DNA from: Gekko japonicus | Taxonomy: Eukaryota | Direction of reading: 5' to 3' | DNA: 64,000 nt | NCBI RefSeq assembly: GCF_001447785.1 | Contig: NW_015177015.1 | Location: forward strand, 396,165-460,164 | Shown here: positions 16,985 through 42,480 of the stretch, one piece after another | Position numbering within the stretch: the stretch's first letter is position 1 | Layout of the letters: every line of letters starts with the position of its first letter | The notes under the pieces: model-generated | Databases searched by the model: none | What the model was told of the DNA's origin: nothing | Seen by the model: the letters and a program-made list of their open reading frames with translations, nothing else | Program-made: the position numbers and the translations under genes

Positions 16985-17565
16985 ATTTATTTATTTATAT
17001 TTATATTTATTTATTTATCTTTAGATTTGTATCCCGCCCTACCCCGAAGGCTCAGGGCGGCTAACAAGGGCACAAAGTGCCAAGATTAAAACAATAAAAG
17101 CACATGATATAAAACAGTAAAATACAGTAACAAAATCACAGTGCTCCATTTGTCACAAGATGGGGTAGATCTTAAACCCAACGGTAACTTTCCCGAAATC
17201 TATCATCCTTTTGCTGCCAGGGGCACCTCGCACCCCCAAAGGGGCCAGATAGTCGTGATGATGGTGCGACGGTGCATAGATGGCAATGATGGAGTAATAG
17301 TGGCGGTGGCTCCTACTCGAAAGCCTGGTGGAAGAGCTCTGTCTTGCAGGTCCTGCGCAACTGAGAAAGATCCCGCAGGGCCCGGATCTCCTCCGGGAGC
17401 TCCTTCCACCAGGTAGGAGCTGCCACCGAAAATGCCCTGGCTCTGGTCACCACAAATTTAATATCCTTGGGGCCTGGAATTTCCAGGAGATGACGACCCC
17501 CCGACCGTAGTGCCCTTGGGGGAACATATGGAGGTAGGCTGGACCCTGACCATAACCCTGGACAT
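16985..17565 (-). mobile_element. L2 3' fragment
   Basis: RAFSVAAPTWWKELP...CKTELFHQAF ORF end plus (TAAA)n tail. Confidence 0.88.
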
Positions 17566-28439: not shown

Positions 28440-28934
28440 CAGGGGTCAATTTTTGCGGGAGCGCACAGGAGCGGAGCTCCAGCAGTAAGGAGCCCAGGGG
28501 GTGGGCACATGCAACAAGCCCCGCCCCCTGCTCCCAGCAGCCCTCAGTTGGGCCACGAGGAGCAAGAAGCAGCCAGGGAAGTTTCAGAGTCCCCCCCCCC
28601 CACCCCGCGCGAGAGCACCNNNNNNNNNNNNNNNNNNNNNNNNNNNNNNNNNNNNNNNNNNNNNNNNNNNNNNNNNNNNNNNNNNNNNNNNNNNNNNNNN
28701 NNNNNACAAGTTTATTCAGGGCACAGCCCCCCCTCCCCCGTGAGGACAGATCTGCCCATCCCCCCCCCCCCCAAATAGCTAGCAATCTAAAACAGTCCAG
28801 TGGAGCCTGAGCAGTGGGTGTTACCTTCTGACACACTTCCAGTGATGTCAGGGGGTGTGGCATATGCAAATAAATTATGCAAATAAGTTATGCTAATGAG
28901 CTCCTGCACCTCTTTTTCTACGAAATGACCCCTG
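28440..28934. mobile_element. Non-autonomous hAT transposon (MITE); spans an assembly gap at 28620-28705
   Basis: TIRs CAGGGGTCAATTT / AAATGACCCCTG; 8-bp TSD CTAATAAT / CTAATCAT; sister copy at 60236-60634. Confidence 0.85.
28620..28705. other. Assembly gap (N run)
   Basis: Run of n between poly-C/GC-rich flanks. Confidence 0.99.
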
Positions 28935-34856: not shown

Positions 34857-35775
34857 TTTATTCATTTATTTATTCAATTTATACCCCACCCTCCCTGCTG
34901 AGTGGGCTCAGGGCGGCTTACAAAGAGATTAAACATATAGACAGCTGTGCCCTGTGGGACCTAGTTTATTTAATTATTAATTATTCAACTTATACCCTGC
35001 CCTCCCTGCAAAGCAGGCTTAGGGTGGCATACATTCATTAAAACAAATTCCATAATATATAAATAGCAGTTAAAATCCATTAAAATCCACATACAACAAT
35101 TCAGTTTCAGTAATAATAATAATAATAATAAGTGCTGTCAATGGTTTCACTAATTATGCAAGGCAGCATACTCTTTATAAGTTTTTCAGTTACTTGTGTG
35201 ATGTTCTTCACACAGGCCGGCTATCACAGCAGAGAGTTGGTGGTGATAGTGGGGGCGGCTCCTAGTTGAAGGCCTGGTGGAAGAGCTCCATCTTGTAGGC
35301 CCAACGGAACTGTAAAAGGTCCTGAGGGCCCTGATCTCTTCTGGGAGCTCATTTCATCAGTACGGAGCAACAACTGAGAAGGCCCTAGCCCTGGTTGTGG
35401 CCAGCCTGGCATTTTTAAGACCTGGGAGGCCAATTTTGTGACCCTGAACACAGTGCTCTCAGGGGAACGTGTGGGGAAAGGCGTTCCCTCAGGTATGTGG
35501 GCCCCTGACCATAAAGGGCTTTAAAGGTAAGTACCAGCACCTTGAAGTGAATTCGGTATGCTATCGACAGCCAGTGCTGGATGTGCTCCCATATAGTGAG
35601 GCCCATCAGAAACCCGGTTGCAGGATTTTGCACTAGCTGTAGCTTCTGGATTTGGGTCAAGGGCAGCCCCATGTAGAGAGCATTACAGTAGTCCAATCCT
35701 GAGGTGACCATTGCATGGATCACTGTCGCCAAGTCATTGCATTCGAGTAAGGGAACCAACTGCCTAAGAACACAA
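34857..35775 (-). mobile_element. L2 fragments (two 3' tails plus RT C-terminus)
   Basis: LDYCNALYMGLP..KLQLVQN..FKVLVLTFKAL motifs; (TAAA)-type tails at ~34857 and ~34965. Confidence 0.88.
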
Positions 35776-37824: not shown

Positions 37825-37932
37825 ATTTATTTATTTATTTATTTATTATTCACATTTCTATCCCGCCCTCCCCGGAGGCTCAGGGCGGCTTACAGGGCAT
37901 AATGCCAGATAAAACAGTAAAACAATACAAAA
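37825..37932 (-). mobile_element. L2 3' tail abutting the DIRS right terminus
   Basis: (TTTA)n plus atcccgccctccc...gctcagggcggcttaca, as in the other L2 tails. Confidence 0.8.
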
Positions 37933-38325
37933 AAACAGGTGATCTACGAGTGGTCATCTGTGCATTCACACCGATGGGTCTAGTGCGCCTGCGCTGGACC
38001 AGACCAGTACTGTAGCAAGCTCTTTCCGAAGGAATCTTCGCGCTCGTTCCCTCAGGCAGCAGCAGGAGCCCAGTGCGCATGCCCAGAGGGACGGGCGCGG
38101 ACATCCCCTCAGTTCCTCCAAAACACCGCCGCATATCAACCTCCAACAGGAAAGTAGAAGCTGACAGCAGCGGGGAAGGAGGGTGGGTGGTGTGAATGCT
38201 CAGATGACCACTCGAAGATCACCAGTTACTGGTAAGCAACCTGTTTATCTTCTTCGTGGTCTCTGTGCTTCACACCGATGGGAGATTAGCGAGCTATAGC
38301 CTACCTGGAGGAGGGTGCTGGCAGG

Positions 38326-41216
38326 TTAATGCTCAGCCGAAGACAAAATGCGACGTCCCATGTCAGCCTTGCTGTTCCTTCGGACGTCAATGGCATAATG
38401 TCTGATAAAAGTATTAGGAGTGGCCCAAGTTGCAGCGTTACAGATGTCGTGCAGTGGCACTCCTTTGAGAAAGGCAGTGGATGTCACAAGAGCTCTGGTG
38501 GAATGAGCCCTGATAGGGCCAGGCAGCTGTCGTTTCGCAAGCAGGTAGCATAGCCGAATTAATTCCACTATCCACTTAGACAGTCGTTGCGATGTAACAC
38601 GACTTCCCAGTCTTGAGGACGCATATGAAACAAATAAATGCGGATCTCGTCTGGTCGGCTGCGTCCGTTGCAAGTAAAACAAGAGGGCTCTCTTAACATC
38701 CAACGTATGAAGCAGTCGGTCCTCATCCGACGTAGGGTTTGGGAAAAAATCTGGCAGTACTACTTCAGCCTGCAGATGGAATTCCGAGACAACTTTAGGT
38801 AAAAACGAGACGTCTGGCACCAAGCGAATCGCGTCCGGGAGGACGGCAAGGTAAGGTGGGTCATGCCTAAAAGCCAACAACTCTCCCACCCTCCTGGCCG
38901 ACGTGAGGGCGGTCAAGAAGGCTGTTTTCCAAGCCAGTAGGCGTAACTCACATGAAGCAAGCGGTTCAAAGGGCTTTCGAGTCGGCGCAAGACAAGGGGC
39001 AGGTCCCAGGGGACAACTGGAGATTTAACAGGAGGATAAAGTCTCAACAATCCCTTCAGAAAACGTTTAGTAACTGGATGCATGAACAGTGTGCATCCCT
39101 CAATCTGAACATGAAATGCCGATAGAGCGGCTAAGTAAACACGCAACGAGGAGTGGGAGAGTCCCGAGTCAGCTAGGGATAGTATAAACGAAAAAACTTT
39201 CTCCAGTCCAGCTGAAGCTGCGTGACGTGTATCAGTTCCCAGGAAGGAACAAAATTTCTTCCATTAACTGTCGTAATACCTTCTTGTGGACGGTTTTCTC
39301 GAATTCAATAAGACGTGAGCTATACGCGTGGAGAAGGTTGAGAAATTATTCGCCACGCCGTCAGTTTCAGTTGTTTGACGTTGTGGTGCAGAACCGGTGA
39401 GTCTGGAAGACAAAGTAGGTCTGGGGCAAAGGGAAAGTGATGAAAAGTTCCCTGAGATAGTTCCAGGAGCGTGGAGAACCAGGGCTGTCTGGGCCACCAA
39501 GGCGTCACAAGAATCACGTCTGCATTCTCTCTGAGAATTCTGCGAACCACTCTGAGTAGCAGAGGCAGGGGAGGGAACATGTAGAGATGTTGCTTGGACC
39601 AAGGATAAAGCAGACCGTCCCCTAGGGACTGTTCGTCGTAACCTCCGCGGCTGCAGAATAGACGACACTTCTTGTTCTGACTTGTGGCAAAGACGTCGAC
39701 TTGGGGAGTCCCCCACTTCTGGAAAAGAGGAAGGAGGTAACGATGGCTTATCCCCCATTCGTGTAGGCTGAGTCCAGAGCGACTTAGATGATCTGCCTGC
39801 ACGTTCAGACGTCCTGGTATGTGAGTCGCCACTAGAAAGATATTGTTGGTTCTGCAGAGGTCCCACAAATCTATTGCAAGATTGCAAAGGCGCATGGATA
39901 CCGTACCTCCTTGCCTGTTTATGTACGAGACTGCCGTGGTGTTGTCCGTCAGAATGGTAACGCACTTTCCCTCGATTAAGGGGAGGAAGCTTGTCACCGC
40001 GTGGCGAACTGCCAGAAGTTCTAAGTAATTGATGTGAGGAGCTACCATGCTTGCGTCCCACCTGTCTCCGATGGAGAAACCCATGGAGTGGGCACCCCAA
40101 CCCTTCATCGAAGCATCTGTAGTAATGGTGACTTCTGGTACTGGAGGGTGGAAAGGAGCTCCCTGGAGGAGATTTTCTGGTAGAGTCCACCACCTTACTG
40201 CATCCCTTATGTGGGCAGGAGGTGCAAGTGTTATCGCGTGAGCGTCCCAAGACGGATTGTATTTGCGTAGAAACCACAGTTGTAAGCGCCTCATCTTGAG
40301 CCTCGCGAAAACCAAGACTGCCGTCGTTGCGGCCATGAGACCTAATAGTCGTTGGATGAGGAAGGCTGTGGTCGTGGGCCCTGTGCAGAAATGTGTGGCA
40401 AGGGAAGTAATGTCCTTGGCTCTGTCTGGGGGCAGGTATGCCATACACACAGTGGAGTCCAGGATGGCCCCTATATACTGTATCCGTTGTACAGGGCAAA
40501 GATGTGATTTTTGTAGATTGACCTTCAGTCCCAGGTCGTCCAGGAGGGACAACGTGTCCGTGACGTTCAAGGTGAGAGAGTGTTCCGACGGAGCGACCAT
40601 AAGCCAGTCGTCTATGTAGGGGTAGATGGACACCCCTTTGAGACGTAGGAAAGCCGCCACTACAATCATCACCTTCGTAAACACTCAAGGGGCGCTGGAG
40701 AGGCCGAACGGAAGGGCCGTGTACTGGAAGTGTTCTTGGCCTATAGCAAACCTGAGGTATTGACGGTAAAAGGGGTGGATATTGAGGTGAAAGTATGCGT
40801 CCTGCAAATCCAGGGTAGCCATCCAGACCCTCTTGTGGAGTAGTGGTAAAATTTGTTGAAGAGAGACCATACGGAAGCGGTGATATGAAACGTAACGGTT
40901 CAATCCTCTCAGATCTAGAATAGGTCGAACTCCACCGTCTCTCTTCGGCACTGTGAAATAGCGGGAATAGAATCCCCGTCGCTGGAGGTGAGGTGGTACA
41001 GGTTCGATGGCCCCTTTTTGCAGAAGGAGGGAAACCTCTAGAAGGAGGGGGGAGGGAGGGGTGTAGACTACCACAGGAGTGTCTGGACTCTGATGGAATT
41101 GAATCTTGTAACCATGGGTCAGGATGGAAAGGACCCATTGGTCTGATGTAATGAGACTCCAGGTCTGCAGAAAAGGGAAAAGGCGGGTGGATGCTGACTC
41201 GGGACAAGGAAGTCAA
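38326..41216 (-). pseudogene. DIRS ORF3: 650-codon N-terminal region overlapping pol, followed by the tyrosine recombinase (one stop at 39264-39266, one frameshift near 38980)
   Basis: SRKPSTRRYYDS*WKKF, WDLPLVL, TSARRVGEL, FLPKV, AHSTRA, AATW, RHY: R/HxxR/W/Y catalytic set intact. Confidence 0.92.
39320..41212 (-). pseudogene. DIRS pol: reverse transcriptase, RNase H and methyltransferase-like domain, with one nonsense codon at 40685-40687
   Basis: KGAIE, RPILDLR, LDLQDAY, LPFGLSSAP*VFTK (probable CGA>TGA), YIDD, TDAS, HINYLEL, TDN, DVFA...YMFPP...PWWPRQPWF; same frame as gag. Confidence 0.93.
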
Positions 41217-41572
41217 AAACCCTGCTTAGAAGGCTTCGTTTGCTTTCCTCTCGGTGCTTGTTGTGAGGCACCAAACTTAGATTTCTGATAAGCCGGTTTC
41301 TGGCTCCCAGAATATGCATGCGGTCTCCAGCGTGATTCTGGTGATTGATGCGACGAATTGCGCCTCTGCCAAGGCCTGGACCAGGTACGTGGTCTGTGTT
41401 GTTGTCTTGAAGAAGACGACACTCCTAACGCTCTGGAAGCTTTAATACTTTTATCCAACTCCTGCAGAGTTGCGTCAGTGTTGGCGTTAAAAAGTCCTTG
41501 CCCATCGAAGGGCATATCTTCGACTTGGGCTCTAGTGTCAACTGGAAGAGAAGTACTACGCAACCAGGAATT
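41213..41572 (-). pseudogene. DIRS gag, C-terminal fragment (SWLRSTSLPVDTRAQVEDMPFDGQGLF...KQGF*)
   Basis: WLRS...EDMPFDGQGLF motif typical of vertebrate DIRS ORF1; truncated upstream of ~41572. Confidence 0.85.
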
Positions 41573-41574
41573 AG

Positions 41575-41649
41575 CTCTGCTTATAGCTGGCATCATAGCT
41601 GGCATCATTGTATTGATTGTTACTGTTGGAATCCCTCCATCCACACCAG
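41575..41649 (+). CDS. LDLRAD1: LDLRAD1 exon 3, 3' part only (ALLIAGIIAGIIVLIVTVGIPPSTP, transmembrane); 5' part replaced by DIRS sequence
   Basis: Hydrophobic run ending GIPPSTP resembles recalled human ...LVTILGLPSCTP; CAG/GTCGGT phase-1 donor joins in frame to exon 4; upstream sequence is DIRS gag with no polypyrimidine tract. Confidence 0.75.
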
Positions 41650-41749
41650 GTCGGTCAGTGCTAGCTTTTAAAACATTTTTATTATCATCAAGCCATTTCC
41701 AAGGAATAATTGTAGCAACACATTCAACATACCAAATGTTGAATGTGGG

Positions 41750-42045
41750 TGGTCTTGGTCCTTCTCTGGGATCTCTATGCCTGGAAGTGATATCATTGCC
41801 TATGGCACATTGCAGGAGACGTGCTATCATTTAAGGAAAAACGCTATGGTTTTTCCTTAAATGATTGATCATCCCCCCACACAAACAATGTGCCCTGCAC
41901 TATGACATTACCTCCGGGTGATGTCATTGCGTTGGGCATGTTGGCGCAAACACAACACTTTGGGATGGGGTTCCCCCGCCAGCTGGATCAGGGCCGGCAG
42001 ATTGGGGGTTGTGAAAGCGGGCAAACCCCTGCCCCTGGCACCCCA
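41750..42045. mobile_element. Palindromic MITE-like element (probably hAT-derived) with a central perfect 17-bp hairpin
   Basis: ATCATTTAAGGAAAAAC-GCTATG-GTTTTTCCTTAAATGAT at 41826-41865; a similar degenerate element at ~195-460. Confidence 0.55.
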
Positions 42046-42049
42046 ACTG

Positions 42050-42480
42050 TCTGGCTGCTGTGGTAAATTGCCTAAAAGTGAACAAATTTAAACTAAACCC
42101 TGAAAAGACAGAGGTGATGCTGGTTGGGAAGGTGGAGATCTTGAAGGATATGATGCTTCTCACTTTTGATGAAGTTCAGCTTGAACCACTTAAGAGCCTT
42201 TGTGTTATACTGGATCTAACTTTATTACTGGAGAAGCAAGTTAATACAGCTGCAAAAAACACTTTCTACCAACTCAAGCTAGCCCAAAAGATGGCCCTTT
42301 ACCTTGATACTGGATCTATGCACAGTAACATTGAAAGCAGACCATAGCTTCAAAAGCAAACTACTGTAATGCACTGTAGATTGGTCTCCCCTCAAAATCA
42401 GTTTGGAAACTCCAGTAGGTGCAGAATGCCGAAGTTTGGCTATTATCTGGAGCTAGATATGTATTCCATTCTGCAGTCAC
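42050..42480 (+). mobile_element. Old L2 RT fragment
   Basis: NKFKLNPEKTEVMLVG motif, ctactgtaatgcact, gcagaatgc. Confidence 0.8.

Follow-up and report, generated by a model that had tools for sequence, protein, structure and literature searches.

How does a DIRS1-like (tyrosine-recombinase) retrotransposon express three proteins from one RNA, and does the end of its gag gene serve as the place where translation branches? The question is raised by a DIRS-type element on the minus strand of a 64,000-nt stretch of Gekko japonicus DNA (NCBI RefSeq assembly GCF_001447785.1, contig NW_015177015.1, positions 396,165–460,164; hereafter "the window"), in which gag ends in a run of five U's and a leaky UGA stop. 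The original prediction was that this one site could yield Gag by termination, Gag-Pol by readthrough of the UGA, and a fusion of Gag with the tyrosine recombinase (YR) by −1 frameshifting on the heptamer G_GGU_UUU. We find that everything the original prediction stated about the sequence is correct. Its interpretation is only partly supported: the end of gag is very probably a translational branching point for all three DIRS proteins, but in most related loci the frame relations imply different routes, and the proposed routes, although they fit the frames of this copy, cannot be proven from it.

Frames at the end of gag in the window copy

On the minus strand, the motif GGGTTTTTGAC is located at 41222–41212 and occurs only once in the window (0.04 matches expected by chance). 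The gag ORF ends with the codons CAG GGT TTT TGA, followed by C, and its heptamer is in the X_XXY_YYZ phase. Frame 0 after the TGA reads directly into the conserved N-terminus of the DIRS reverse transcriptase (RT): the match to a pol profile HMM built from DIRS1-like relatives begins at residue 6 after the stop and covers positions 33–656 of 658, whereas the first ATG lies about 113 codons in. The −1 frame opens after a TAA at 41228–41226, two codons before the heptamer, and carries an ATG about 30 codons in. We considered whether this TAA could be the true gag stop, with the −1 frame being gag, but rejected this reading because that frame is open for only 16 codons upstream. The −1 ORF ("X") is not a separate protein family; it is the alternative frame of pol and corresponds to the known "long overlap" of DIRS1-like elements. 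The features of the element are listed in Table 1.

Table 1. Features of the DIRS1-like element in the window.
Position	Strand	Feature	Evidence
41837..42427	−	Repeated 5′ part of the element; 5′ edge near 42430, judged from read depth	DNA depth 32–106, against about 1 beyond 42428; no left inverted terminal repeat identified
41213..41830	−	gag-like ORF (205 codons plus stop), ATG at 41830	ORF list and translation; weak similarity to gag ORFs of loci L034 and L074 (phmmer E 1e-4 and 1e-3); no Pfam hit; single copy in the genome at 88% likeness or more
41216..41222	−	In-phase heptamer G_GGT_TTT (X_XXY_YYZ)	The only one of 60 non-redundant DIRS1-like gag ends with a heptamer at the stop
41215..41219	−	Run of five T (U5) spanning the last gag codon and the first base of the stop; a P-site tRNA-Phe could re-pair on UUU in the −1 or the +1 frame	Run read directly from the sequence; slippage inferred from "shifty stops" and the prfB and antizyme sites
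41212..41215	−	gag stop TGA (41215–41213) followed by C	Same tetranucleotide in 19 of 33 non-redundant standard-layout relatives
41186..41211	−	26-nt linker between the codon after the stop and the first conserved RT codons; length 3n+2, so that everything 3′ of it is one base out of the standard DIRS1-like register	Frame arithmetic against relatives; linker peptides without significant similarity to relatives in either frame
40688..41212	−	pol, part 1 (RT N-terminal half), frame 0 relative to gag	Pfam RVT_1 E 2.5e-8; pol HMM positions 33–206
40685..40687	−	In-frame stop inside RT (a lesion)	Translation
39320..40684	−	pol, part 2 (RT C-terminal half, RNase H, C-terminal MT-like region), stop at 39322–39320	Pfam RVT_1 and RT_RNaseH; pol HMM positions 208–656; 48% identity to reptile-like pol proteins
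39264..41225	−	−1 frame ORF (X, 650 codons from the first TTG); overlaps all of pol, runs into the YR N-terminal domain and ends at a premature stop at 39266–39264	No Pfam domain; homologue of the stop-free X region of relatives
38326..39263	−	Tyrosine recombinase; SAM-like N-terminal part in the X frame, catalytic part in another frame after a break near 38985; stop at 38328–38326	Three-frame translation; phmmer matches to YR ORFs of 60 loci; Pfam Phage_int_SAM and Phage_integrase in relatives
37934..38227	.	3′ terminus and internal complementary region: 39-nt inverted repeat 37934–37972 / 38189–38227	92% complementary; very high copy number at 38094–38290

The assignment to DIRS1-like retrotransposons rests on a pol with RT and RNase H related to Ty3/Gypsy and a C-terminal MT-like region, which falls in a clade with reptile-like proteins (99 per cent support), and on a tyrosine recombinase, instead of a DDE integrase, located 3′ of pol. 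A repeat search recovered the right terminus and its internal complementary region but no convincing left inverted terminal repeat. The copy is dead, as it carries one stop in RT and one stop and one frameshift in YR. No other copy was found within the window (blastn), which also contains a run of N at 28620–28705, and protein searches with both pol pieces returned nothing closer than 48–60 per cent identity, so no same-family ORFs.

Gag junctions of related loci

To place these frames in context, we compared the window with related DIRS1-like loci (designated L001 and so on). In 45 of about 57 informative loci (36 of about 47 metagenomic loci and 9 of 9 further loci), gag is followed by a single stop and then, from the very next codon, by a ~1000-codon X-YR ORF in the same frame, whereas pol lies in the +1 frame. 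Viral contigs gave one distant locus. This standard layout, which we define here, is spread over both main branches of the pol tree. Among 33 non-redundant junctions with this layout, the gag stop is TGA in 29, TGA-C in 19 and TAA in none; for the pol and YR stops together, the respective counts are 13, 4 and 22 of 64 (Fisher P = 1e-10, 5e-8 and 3e-5). The X frame contains no stops in any of the 33, whereas synonymous shuffles of pol give 15–39 and never fewer than 5. Moreover, 11 of the 36 standard-layout metagenomic loci have no ATG between the opening of the pol frame and the RT motif, and 10 of the 33 junctions have strong hairpins just 3′ of the stop, compared to 3 of 33 controls.

These observations bear on the possibility that no recoding occurs at this site, and that Pol and YR are instead made from spliced or subgenomic RNAs or by internal initiation (for example, at the ATG within X), in which case the frame relations at the gag stop would have no function. 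In its favor, half of the described DIRS1-like elements lack the long overlap (PMC3266345), as does locus L006 in our set, so YR can be expressed otherwise, and in loci L073 and L077 the YR ORF opens 779 nt after the gag stop. RNA reads cover the region but are uninformative about translation. However, no joint across gag/pol is among the listed RNA joints, pol of the window copy has no ATG before the RT core, and internal initiation does not explain why X remains stop-free for ~670 codons up to exactly the gag stop in 45 loci, or why that stop is TGA(-C) and never TAA. We therefore consider this explanation unlikely.

The window does not conform to the standard layout: everything 3′ of its gag stop is displaced by one base, so that pol falls in frame 0 and X-YR in frame −1. 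Conservation of the heptamer had been named in advance as a test, and it was not borne out, as G_GGU_UUU is absent from all 59 other non-redundant gag ends, none of which is a same-family copy; L010 and L013, for instance, read CGG TTT. In-phase X_XXY_YYZ heptamers with Y = A or T occur at 0.27 per cent of codon positions in 60 gag ORFs, and only the window has one that ends at the stop. No significant structure follows the heptamer (MFE z-scores of +0.52, −0.67 and +0.27 against dinucleotide shuffles, for folds without pseudoknots), and no Rfam family matches.

However, the frame relation of the window also exists in one intact relative. Locus L057 has gag in frame 0, pol in frame 0 (after TAG-G) and X-YR in frame −1, with a classical A_AAA_AAC one codon after its −1 ORF opens, whereas locus L059 has pol in frame −1, with G_GGA_AAC 21 nt after the opening. 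The probability that all three permitted windows (those of the window copy, L057 and L059) would hold an in-phase heptamer by chance is about 0.09 × 0.17 × 0.008. The nucleotide alignment of L057 with its sister L003 is too weak beyond a 12-nt match to prove that the L057 heptamer is situated at the ancestral stop, and is suggestive only.

Possible routes to Pol and the tyrosine recombinase

We interpret the site as the gag-terminal recoding hub of a DIRS1-like element. The comparison itself establishes the standard layout, with its weak, mostly UGA-C stop, and the sequence of the window establishes the one-base displacement; what ribosomes do at these junctions is inferred from the frames, in the absence of any direct evidence of translation. 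In the standard layout, termination would give Gag, readthrough would give Gag-X-YR, and a +1 shift at or near the stop would give Gag-Pol, which is the reverse of the original assignment of readthrough to Pol and frameshifting to YR. For the window, we tentatively favor, at somewhat less than even confidence, the hypothesis that the re-phasing belonged to the lineage of the element and that the same hub served it. In this view, which is essentially the original prediction, readthrough of UGA-C gave Gag-Pol, and backward slippage on the U-run, with tRNA-Phe in the P site while the slow UGA-C occupied the A site, gave Gag-X-YR. The U5 run allows perfect re-pairing on UUU in the −1 frame, and termination, readthrough and +1/−1 shifting are known to compete at weak stops (PMC9841425).

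The main alternative is that the progenitor had the standard layout, with pol reached by an RF2-like shift from UUU_UGA_C to UUU GAC, and that this copy suffered a private one-base displacement in the linker after insertion; the X_XXY_YYZ phase of GGGTTTT would then be a coincidence of gag ...G-F-stop overlapping pol ...V-F-D. Several standard loci (L001, L006, L007, L009, L010 and L013) end gag with NTT TGA C. Pol ORFs of relatives in the clade of the window (proteins P0001-3, at 48 per cent identity, and P0009), whose layout is inferred from protein N-termini only, run uninterrupted through an F-D motif that fits the standard NTT_TGA_C overlap (relatives in this clade read AFDS or IFDW at the homologous place). 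The window's own +1 frame still reads V-F-D there and is still open 70 codons upstream, as in standard loci, so the displacement could be recent. The copy also carries one other frameshift and two nonsense changes, the linker is hypervariable in length among relatives (4–24 residues), and no 3′ stimulator was found. A comparison of the linker peptides in frames 0 and +1 with the linkers of clade relatives showed no significant similarity in either frame (P = 0.5–0.8) and did not narrow down the position of the displacement.

Conversely, a private lesion requires two coincidences: a frameshifting change within about 26 nt (roughly 1–3 per cent for a copy this young) and an in-phase heptamer within a three-codon window (0.8 per cent at the baseline rate, perhaps a few per cent in this G/T context). 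The read data also hint that sibling copies share the linker length, as position 41207 is covered by 16 of 16 DNA reads, where single copy is about 1, and by two sibling contigs, and no indel is listed in the linker. However, the gag part and the hub are about single copy at 88 per cent likeness or more, and no sibling copy could be read across the hub. With L057 demonstrating that the re-phased layout can exist with all ORFs intact, we regard a private lesion as possible, but somewhat less likely than a re-phasing of the lineage.

The same read-depth profile raises the possibility that the hub is a chimeric junction, in which two subfamilies recombined at or near it and the frame relation is an accident. 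The 205-codon gag segment (41223–41836) is single copy, whereas both flanks are repeated (depth of 32–106 at 41837–42427, 0.3–4 at 41246–41836 and 13–28 at 40655–41245). Additionally, one sibling contig ends 15 nt from 41207, and a 28-nt palindrome lies at the 5′ edge of the segment (41815–41876). However, the direction and content of the sibling contigs could not be read, and gag evolves much faster than pol (in third-position and overall differences), so that a drop below 88 per cent likeness at the gag/pol border is expected without any recombination. We consider a chimeric origin unlikely.

Relation to known recoding systems

The standard layout resembles gag-pol readthrough in gammaretroviruses (MuLV) and type II UGA-C readthrough in alphaviruses and plant viruses (UGA_CUAG in mammals, PMC9841425), in that a single leaky stop is followed in frame by a long essential ORF without its own start. 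UGA followed by C is the weakest terminator, and many DIRS1-like relatives even read UGA CUA, and a third of the relatives have a hairpin a few nt downstream. In standard DIRS1-like elements, however, the ORF after the stop is not pol but a ~670-codon alternative frame of pol that ends in a tyrosine recombinase. The window has UGA-C and a start-less pol rather than YR in frame, but its extended context is CUU-C, not CUA-G, and it has no detected 3′ structure.

As in −1 programmed frameshifting at X_XXY_YYZ sites (retroviral gag-pro/pol, for example, A_AAA_AAC), the window has a correctly phased heptamer and a −1 ORF that opens just before it, and L057 and L059 carry classical heptamers in the same position relative to their −1 ORFs. 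Unlike such signals, no spacer-plus-structure stimulator was detected in the window, L057 or L059, and the window's heptamer abuts a stop codon, which suggests single-tRNA P-site slippage at a "shifty stop" rather than tandem slippage.

Standard-layout junctions also share the P-site/A-site logic of stop-stimulated +1 frameshifting, as in bacterial prfB (CUU_UGA_C), antizyme (UCC_UGA) and Ty1/Ty3 gag-pol (PMC9841425), since pol is in +1, the stop is UGA-C, and the preceding codon is NUU in about a quarter of lineages and UCC in five. Standard-layout relatives such as L009, L010 and L013 have a P-site codon able to re-pair in +1 next to such a stop, with pol in +1. P-site codons nevertheless vary widely among lineages, and the pol frame stays open a median of 86 codons upstream of the stop, so our data do not fix the entry point. 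The window retains UUU_UGA_C, which allows perfect +1 re-pairing, but its +1 frame is a dead end of 33 codons.

The described DIRS1-like architecture (Piednoel et al. 2011, PMC3266345) comprises gag, pol (RT/RH/MT) and a YR ORF that overlaps pol, with the catalytic domain in the non-overlapping 3′ end, and matches the window and its relatives. The papers that we examined note the overlap, but not that the YR ORF opens at the codon after the gag stop, that this stop is TGA(-C)-biased, or that pol is +1, and they propose no expression mechanism; a large recoding review (PMC5009743) does not contain the word DIRS. We found no description of the hub in this literature, although earlier description by Goodwin and Poulter (2001, 2004, 2005) or Cappello (1985) cannot be excluded.

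A broader possibility, which we put forward only as a hypothesis that is more likely wrong than right, is that DIRS1-like retrotransposons use the single weak stop at the end of gag as a three-way translational switch, in which termination gives Gag, readthrough gives one fusion protein and a frameshift gives the other. Lineages could then permute which enzyme takes which route through a one-base re-phasing at the hub, with YR by readthrough and Pol by +1 in the standard layout, and Pol by readthrough and YR by −1 in L057 and the lineage of the window. The U5-UGA-C of the window would be a site at which ribosomes can continue in all three frames.

How DIRS elements translate pol and the recombinase from one RNA is not explained in the papers we examined, and the main experimental study states that little is known about their replication cycle (PMC7192593). 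The comparative pattern of one stop between gag and a ~1000-codon ORF held open across all of pol, a strong TGA-C bias at that stop, and pol in +1 makes this question directly testable with short reporter cassettes. If confirmed, this would be a retroelement that sets the ratios of three proteins at one stop codon by combining readthrough and frameshifting, and an example of frame routes being swapped during evolution. It would also explain why the puzzling long pol/YR overlap is preserved.

The gag junction of the window copy

On the minus strand, a 205-codon gag-like ORF ends with the codons CAG GGT TTT TGA, and the next base is C. The sequence observation behind the original prediction, that a slippery G_GGU_UUU followed directly by UGA-C could set three DIRS proteins at one site, is correct. 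After the TGA, frame 0 runs directly into the conserved start of a DIRS-type reverse transcriptase (RT) and continues through RNase H and the C-terminal region, with one in-frame interruption. The -1 frame opens two codons before the heptamer, crosses the whole of pol, and enters the N-terminal domain of the tyrosine recombinase (YR) before a premature stop, beyond which the recombinase continues and changes frame. The copy, the only one in the window, is dead, with three lesions outside the junction.

Coordinates of the features identified in the window
Feature	Position	Strand	Details
5' edge of the element	near 42430	minus	placed by read depth
Inverted repeat	41815-41876		28 nt, 82% complementary, 6-nt loop; centred on the gag ATG at 41830
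gag-like ORF	41830-41213	minus	205 codons
TAA preceding the -1 frame	41228-41226	minus	-1 frame then open for 650 codons
11-mer at the end of gag	41222-41212	minus	GGGTTTTTGAC; occurs once in the window
Linker after the gag stop	41211-41186	minus	26 nt
In-frame stop in pol	40687-40685	minus
End of pol	39320	minus
Premature stop in the -1 frame	39266-39264	minus	in the N-terminal domain of YR
Frame change in YR	near 38985	minus
Right terminus and internal complementary region (ICR)	37934-38227	minus
Highly repeated ICR/right-terminus region	37979-38290
Further intervals noted	37825-37922; 16999-17099; 34857-34922
Run of 86 N	28620-28705		assembly gap or masked

The inverted repeat centred on the gag ATG sits exactly at the 5' edge of the single-copy gag segment and could be a rearrangement or recombination scar; that the gag junction itself is chimeric is an explanation that we consider unlikely. 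The ICR/right-terminus region is extremely repeated, with a DNA depth above 2000 where single copy is about 1, and it is also present in RNA. In this region, 143 DNA reads join 38283 back to 37979 (a step back of 305), which fits a 305-nt unit in tandem, or circle-junction-like arrangements, in other copies.

Coding layout of DIRS1-like relatives

The long overlap of the YR ORF with pol is a described feature of about half of DIRS1-like elements (PMC3266345). None of the papers that we examined says how pol and YR are translated, and a very large recoding review does not contain the word DIRS. To place the window copy among its relatives, we took 80 DIRS1-like loci from metagenome contigs, one from viral contigs, and 21 from genome contigs, the last being eukaryotic DNA binned into bacterial MAGs. 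For each locus, pol was mapped with an HMM, YR with phmmer, and the upstream long ORF was located. For the pol tree only, the in-frame stop in the RT of the window copy was bridged with the letter X.

In 36 of about 47 informative metagenomic loci, and in 9 of 9 further loci, gag is followed by exactly one stop, and the next codon opens an ORF of 845–1022 codons in the same frame. The first ~650–670 codons of this ORF (hereafter X) overlap all of pol, the end of the ORF is the recombinase, and pol is in the +1 frame. This standard layout occurs on both main branches of the pol tree. Complete eukaryotic DIRS1-like retrotransposons were found in contigs deposited as bacterial MAGs (loci L082–L091 from the MAG 'Sedimenticola sp.', L084, and L092), probably because host DNA was binned with a symbiont; all nine with a junction have the standard layout, eight of them with TAG stops. 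The contig filed as viral (L081, from IMG/VR) carries a distant DIRS1-like pol (30% identity) on a long branch of the tree and is probably a eukaryotic retroelement, not a virus of bacteria.

Among 33 non-redundant junctions, the gag stop is TGA in 29, TGA-C in 19, and TAA in none, whereas the pol and YR stops of the same elements are TGA in 13 of 64, TGA-C in 4 of 64, and TAA in 22 of 64 (P-values = 1e-10, 5e-8, and 3e-5, respectively). The X frame has no stop in any of the 33, while synonymous shuffles of pol give 15–39 stops and never fewer than 5. Eleven of the 36 standard-layout loci have no ATG between the opening of the pol frame and the RT motif. X has no Pfam domain, and third positions of pol are only about 15–20% less variable than those of gag or the YR domain. 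X therefore looks like a translated spacer rather than a conserved protein.

Ten of the 33 have strong hairpins within 90 nt after the gag stop, against 3 of 33 control positions. In the strong hairpins of four loci (L008, L026, L036, and L042), the 5' arm starts a few nt after the stop and the 3' arm is the G-rich stretch encoding the conserved V-G-G-R(L) start of pol, so that a conserved peptide motif may double as an RNA stimulator.

What the comparison shows is the arrangement of the frames, the bias at the gag stop, and the openness of X; how ribosomes use the junction, and hence the translation of pol and YR, is inferred. We infer that the gag stop is leaky, that readthrough gives Gag-X-YR, and that pol needs a +1 (or -2) shift at or near that stop. 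The P-site codon is NUU in about a quarter of lineages, which is the logic of prfB (NUU_UGA_C read as UUU GAC), and UCC in five lineages, which is the logic of antizyme. However, the pol frame of the 33 standard-layout loci stays open a median of 86 codons upstream of the gag stop, against 18 expected from codon-order shuffles (23 of 33 with P ≤ 0.05). This reflects either the composition of the Arg/Gly-rich gag tail or entry into the pol frame upstream of the stop, and therefore the stop is only one possible point of entry.

A one-base displacement in the window copy

The window copy keeps TTT TGA C, and its +1 frame reads V-F-D across the stop, which matches G-F-D-Y, V-F-D-Y, and A-F-D-C in standard loci, and AFDS and IFDW in protein relatives of its clade. 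The conserved RT codons lie 29 nt after the GAC. Because this distance is 3n+2, everything 3' of the linker is one base out of the standard register. This single displacement turns a layout with YR in frame 0 and pol in +1 into one with pol in frame 0 and YR in -1, which are the frames on which the original prediction rested.

Either the displacement is a private lesion of a decayed copy or it belonged to the lineage. In favor of a lesion, the closest relatives look standard, the heptamer is unique among 60 junctions, neither a 3' structure nor an Rfam match was found at the site, and the +1 frame is still open 70 codons upstream. In favor of the lineage, one intact locus (L057) has the same frame relation (gag, TAG-G, and pol in frame, with X-YR in -1), with a classical A_AAA_AAC one codon after the -1 ORF opens. 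Another locus (L059, positions 1727–2070) presents a third layout of the same hub: all three frames are open for about 200 nt at the end of gag, pol is in -1 with G_GGA_AAC 21 nt after that frame opens, and the YR ORF is in +1. At the measured background of 0.27% per codon, the permitted windows would hold a heptamer by chance with probabilities of 0.09, 0.17, and 0.008, and the lesion reading additionally needs a frameshifting change to fall within about 26 nt.

Read data also bear on this choice. At 41207, six nt after the stop, 16 of 16 DNA reads and two sibling contigs cover the linker where single copy is about 1, and no indel is listed there. This suggests that several copies share the linker length, although the evidence is indirect, because alignments may simply end at the hub. 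Comparison of linker peptides gave no help. On balance, we tentatively prefer the lineage reading, with a private lesion remaining possible and somewhat less favored.

Inferred translation at the gag stop

The five U's followed by GA-C mean that a tRNA-Phe on UUU in the P site can re-pair perfectly one base back, where the next codon is UUG in the X frame, or equally one base forward, where the next codon is GAC. Meanwhile, a poorly recognized UGA-C would wait in the A site, where a near-cognate tRNA can read through it. That termination, readthrough, and both shifts compete at weak stops is established (PMC9841425); that they do so here is our inference. RNA reads cover gag and the hub at low depth and include 11 reads with the window's own letter at 41207, and no splice joint across the junction is among the listed joints. 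These data show transcription, not translation. The absence of any recoding at the site is, in our view, an unlikely alternative.

The interpretation in the original prediction is partly supported. The routes that it proposed (readthrough to Gag-Pol and a -1 frameshift to Gag-YR) fit this copy and have a precedent in L057, but they remain unproven, and we hold them only tentatively. We found no prior description of such a hub in the literature examined, although older papers outside it could contain one. For the superfamily, the idea of one hub for three proteins is strongly supported, with the routes swapped relative to those originally proposed.
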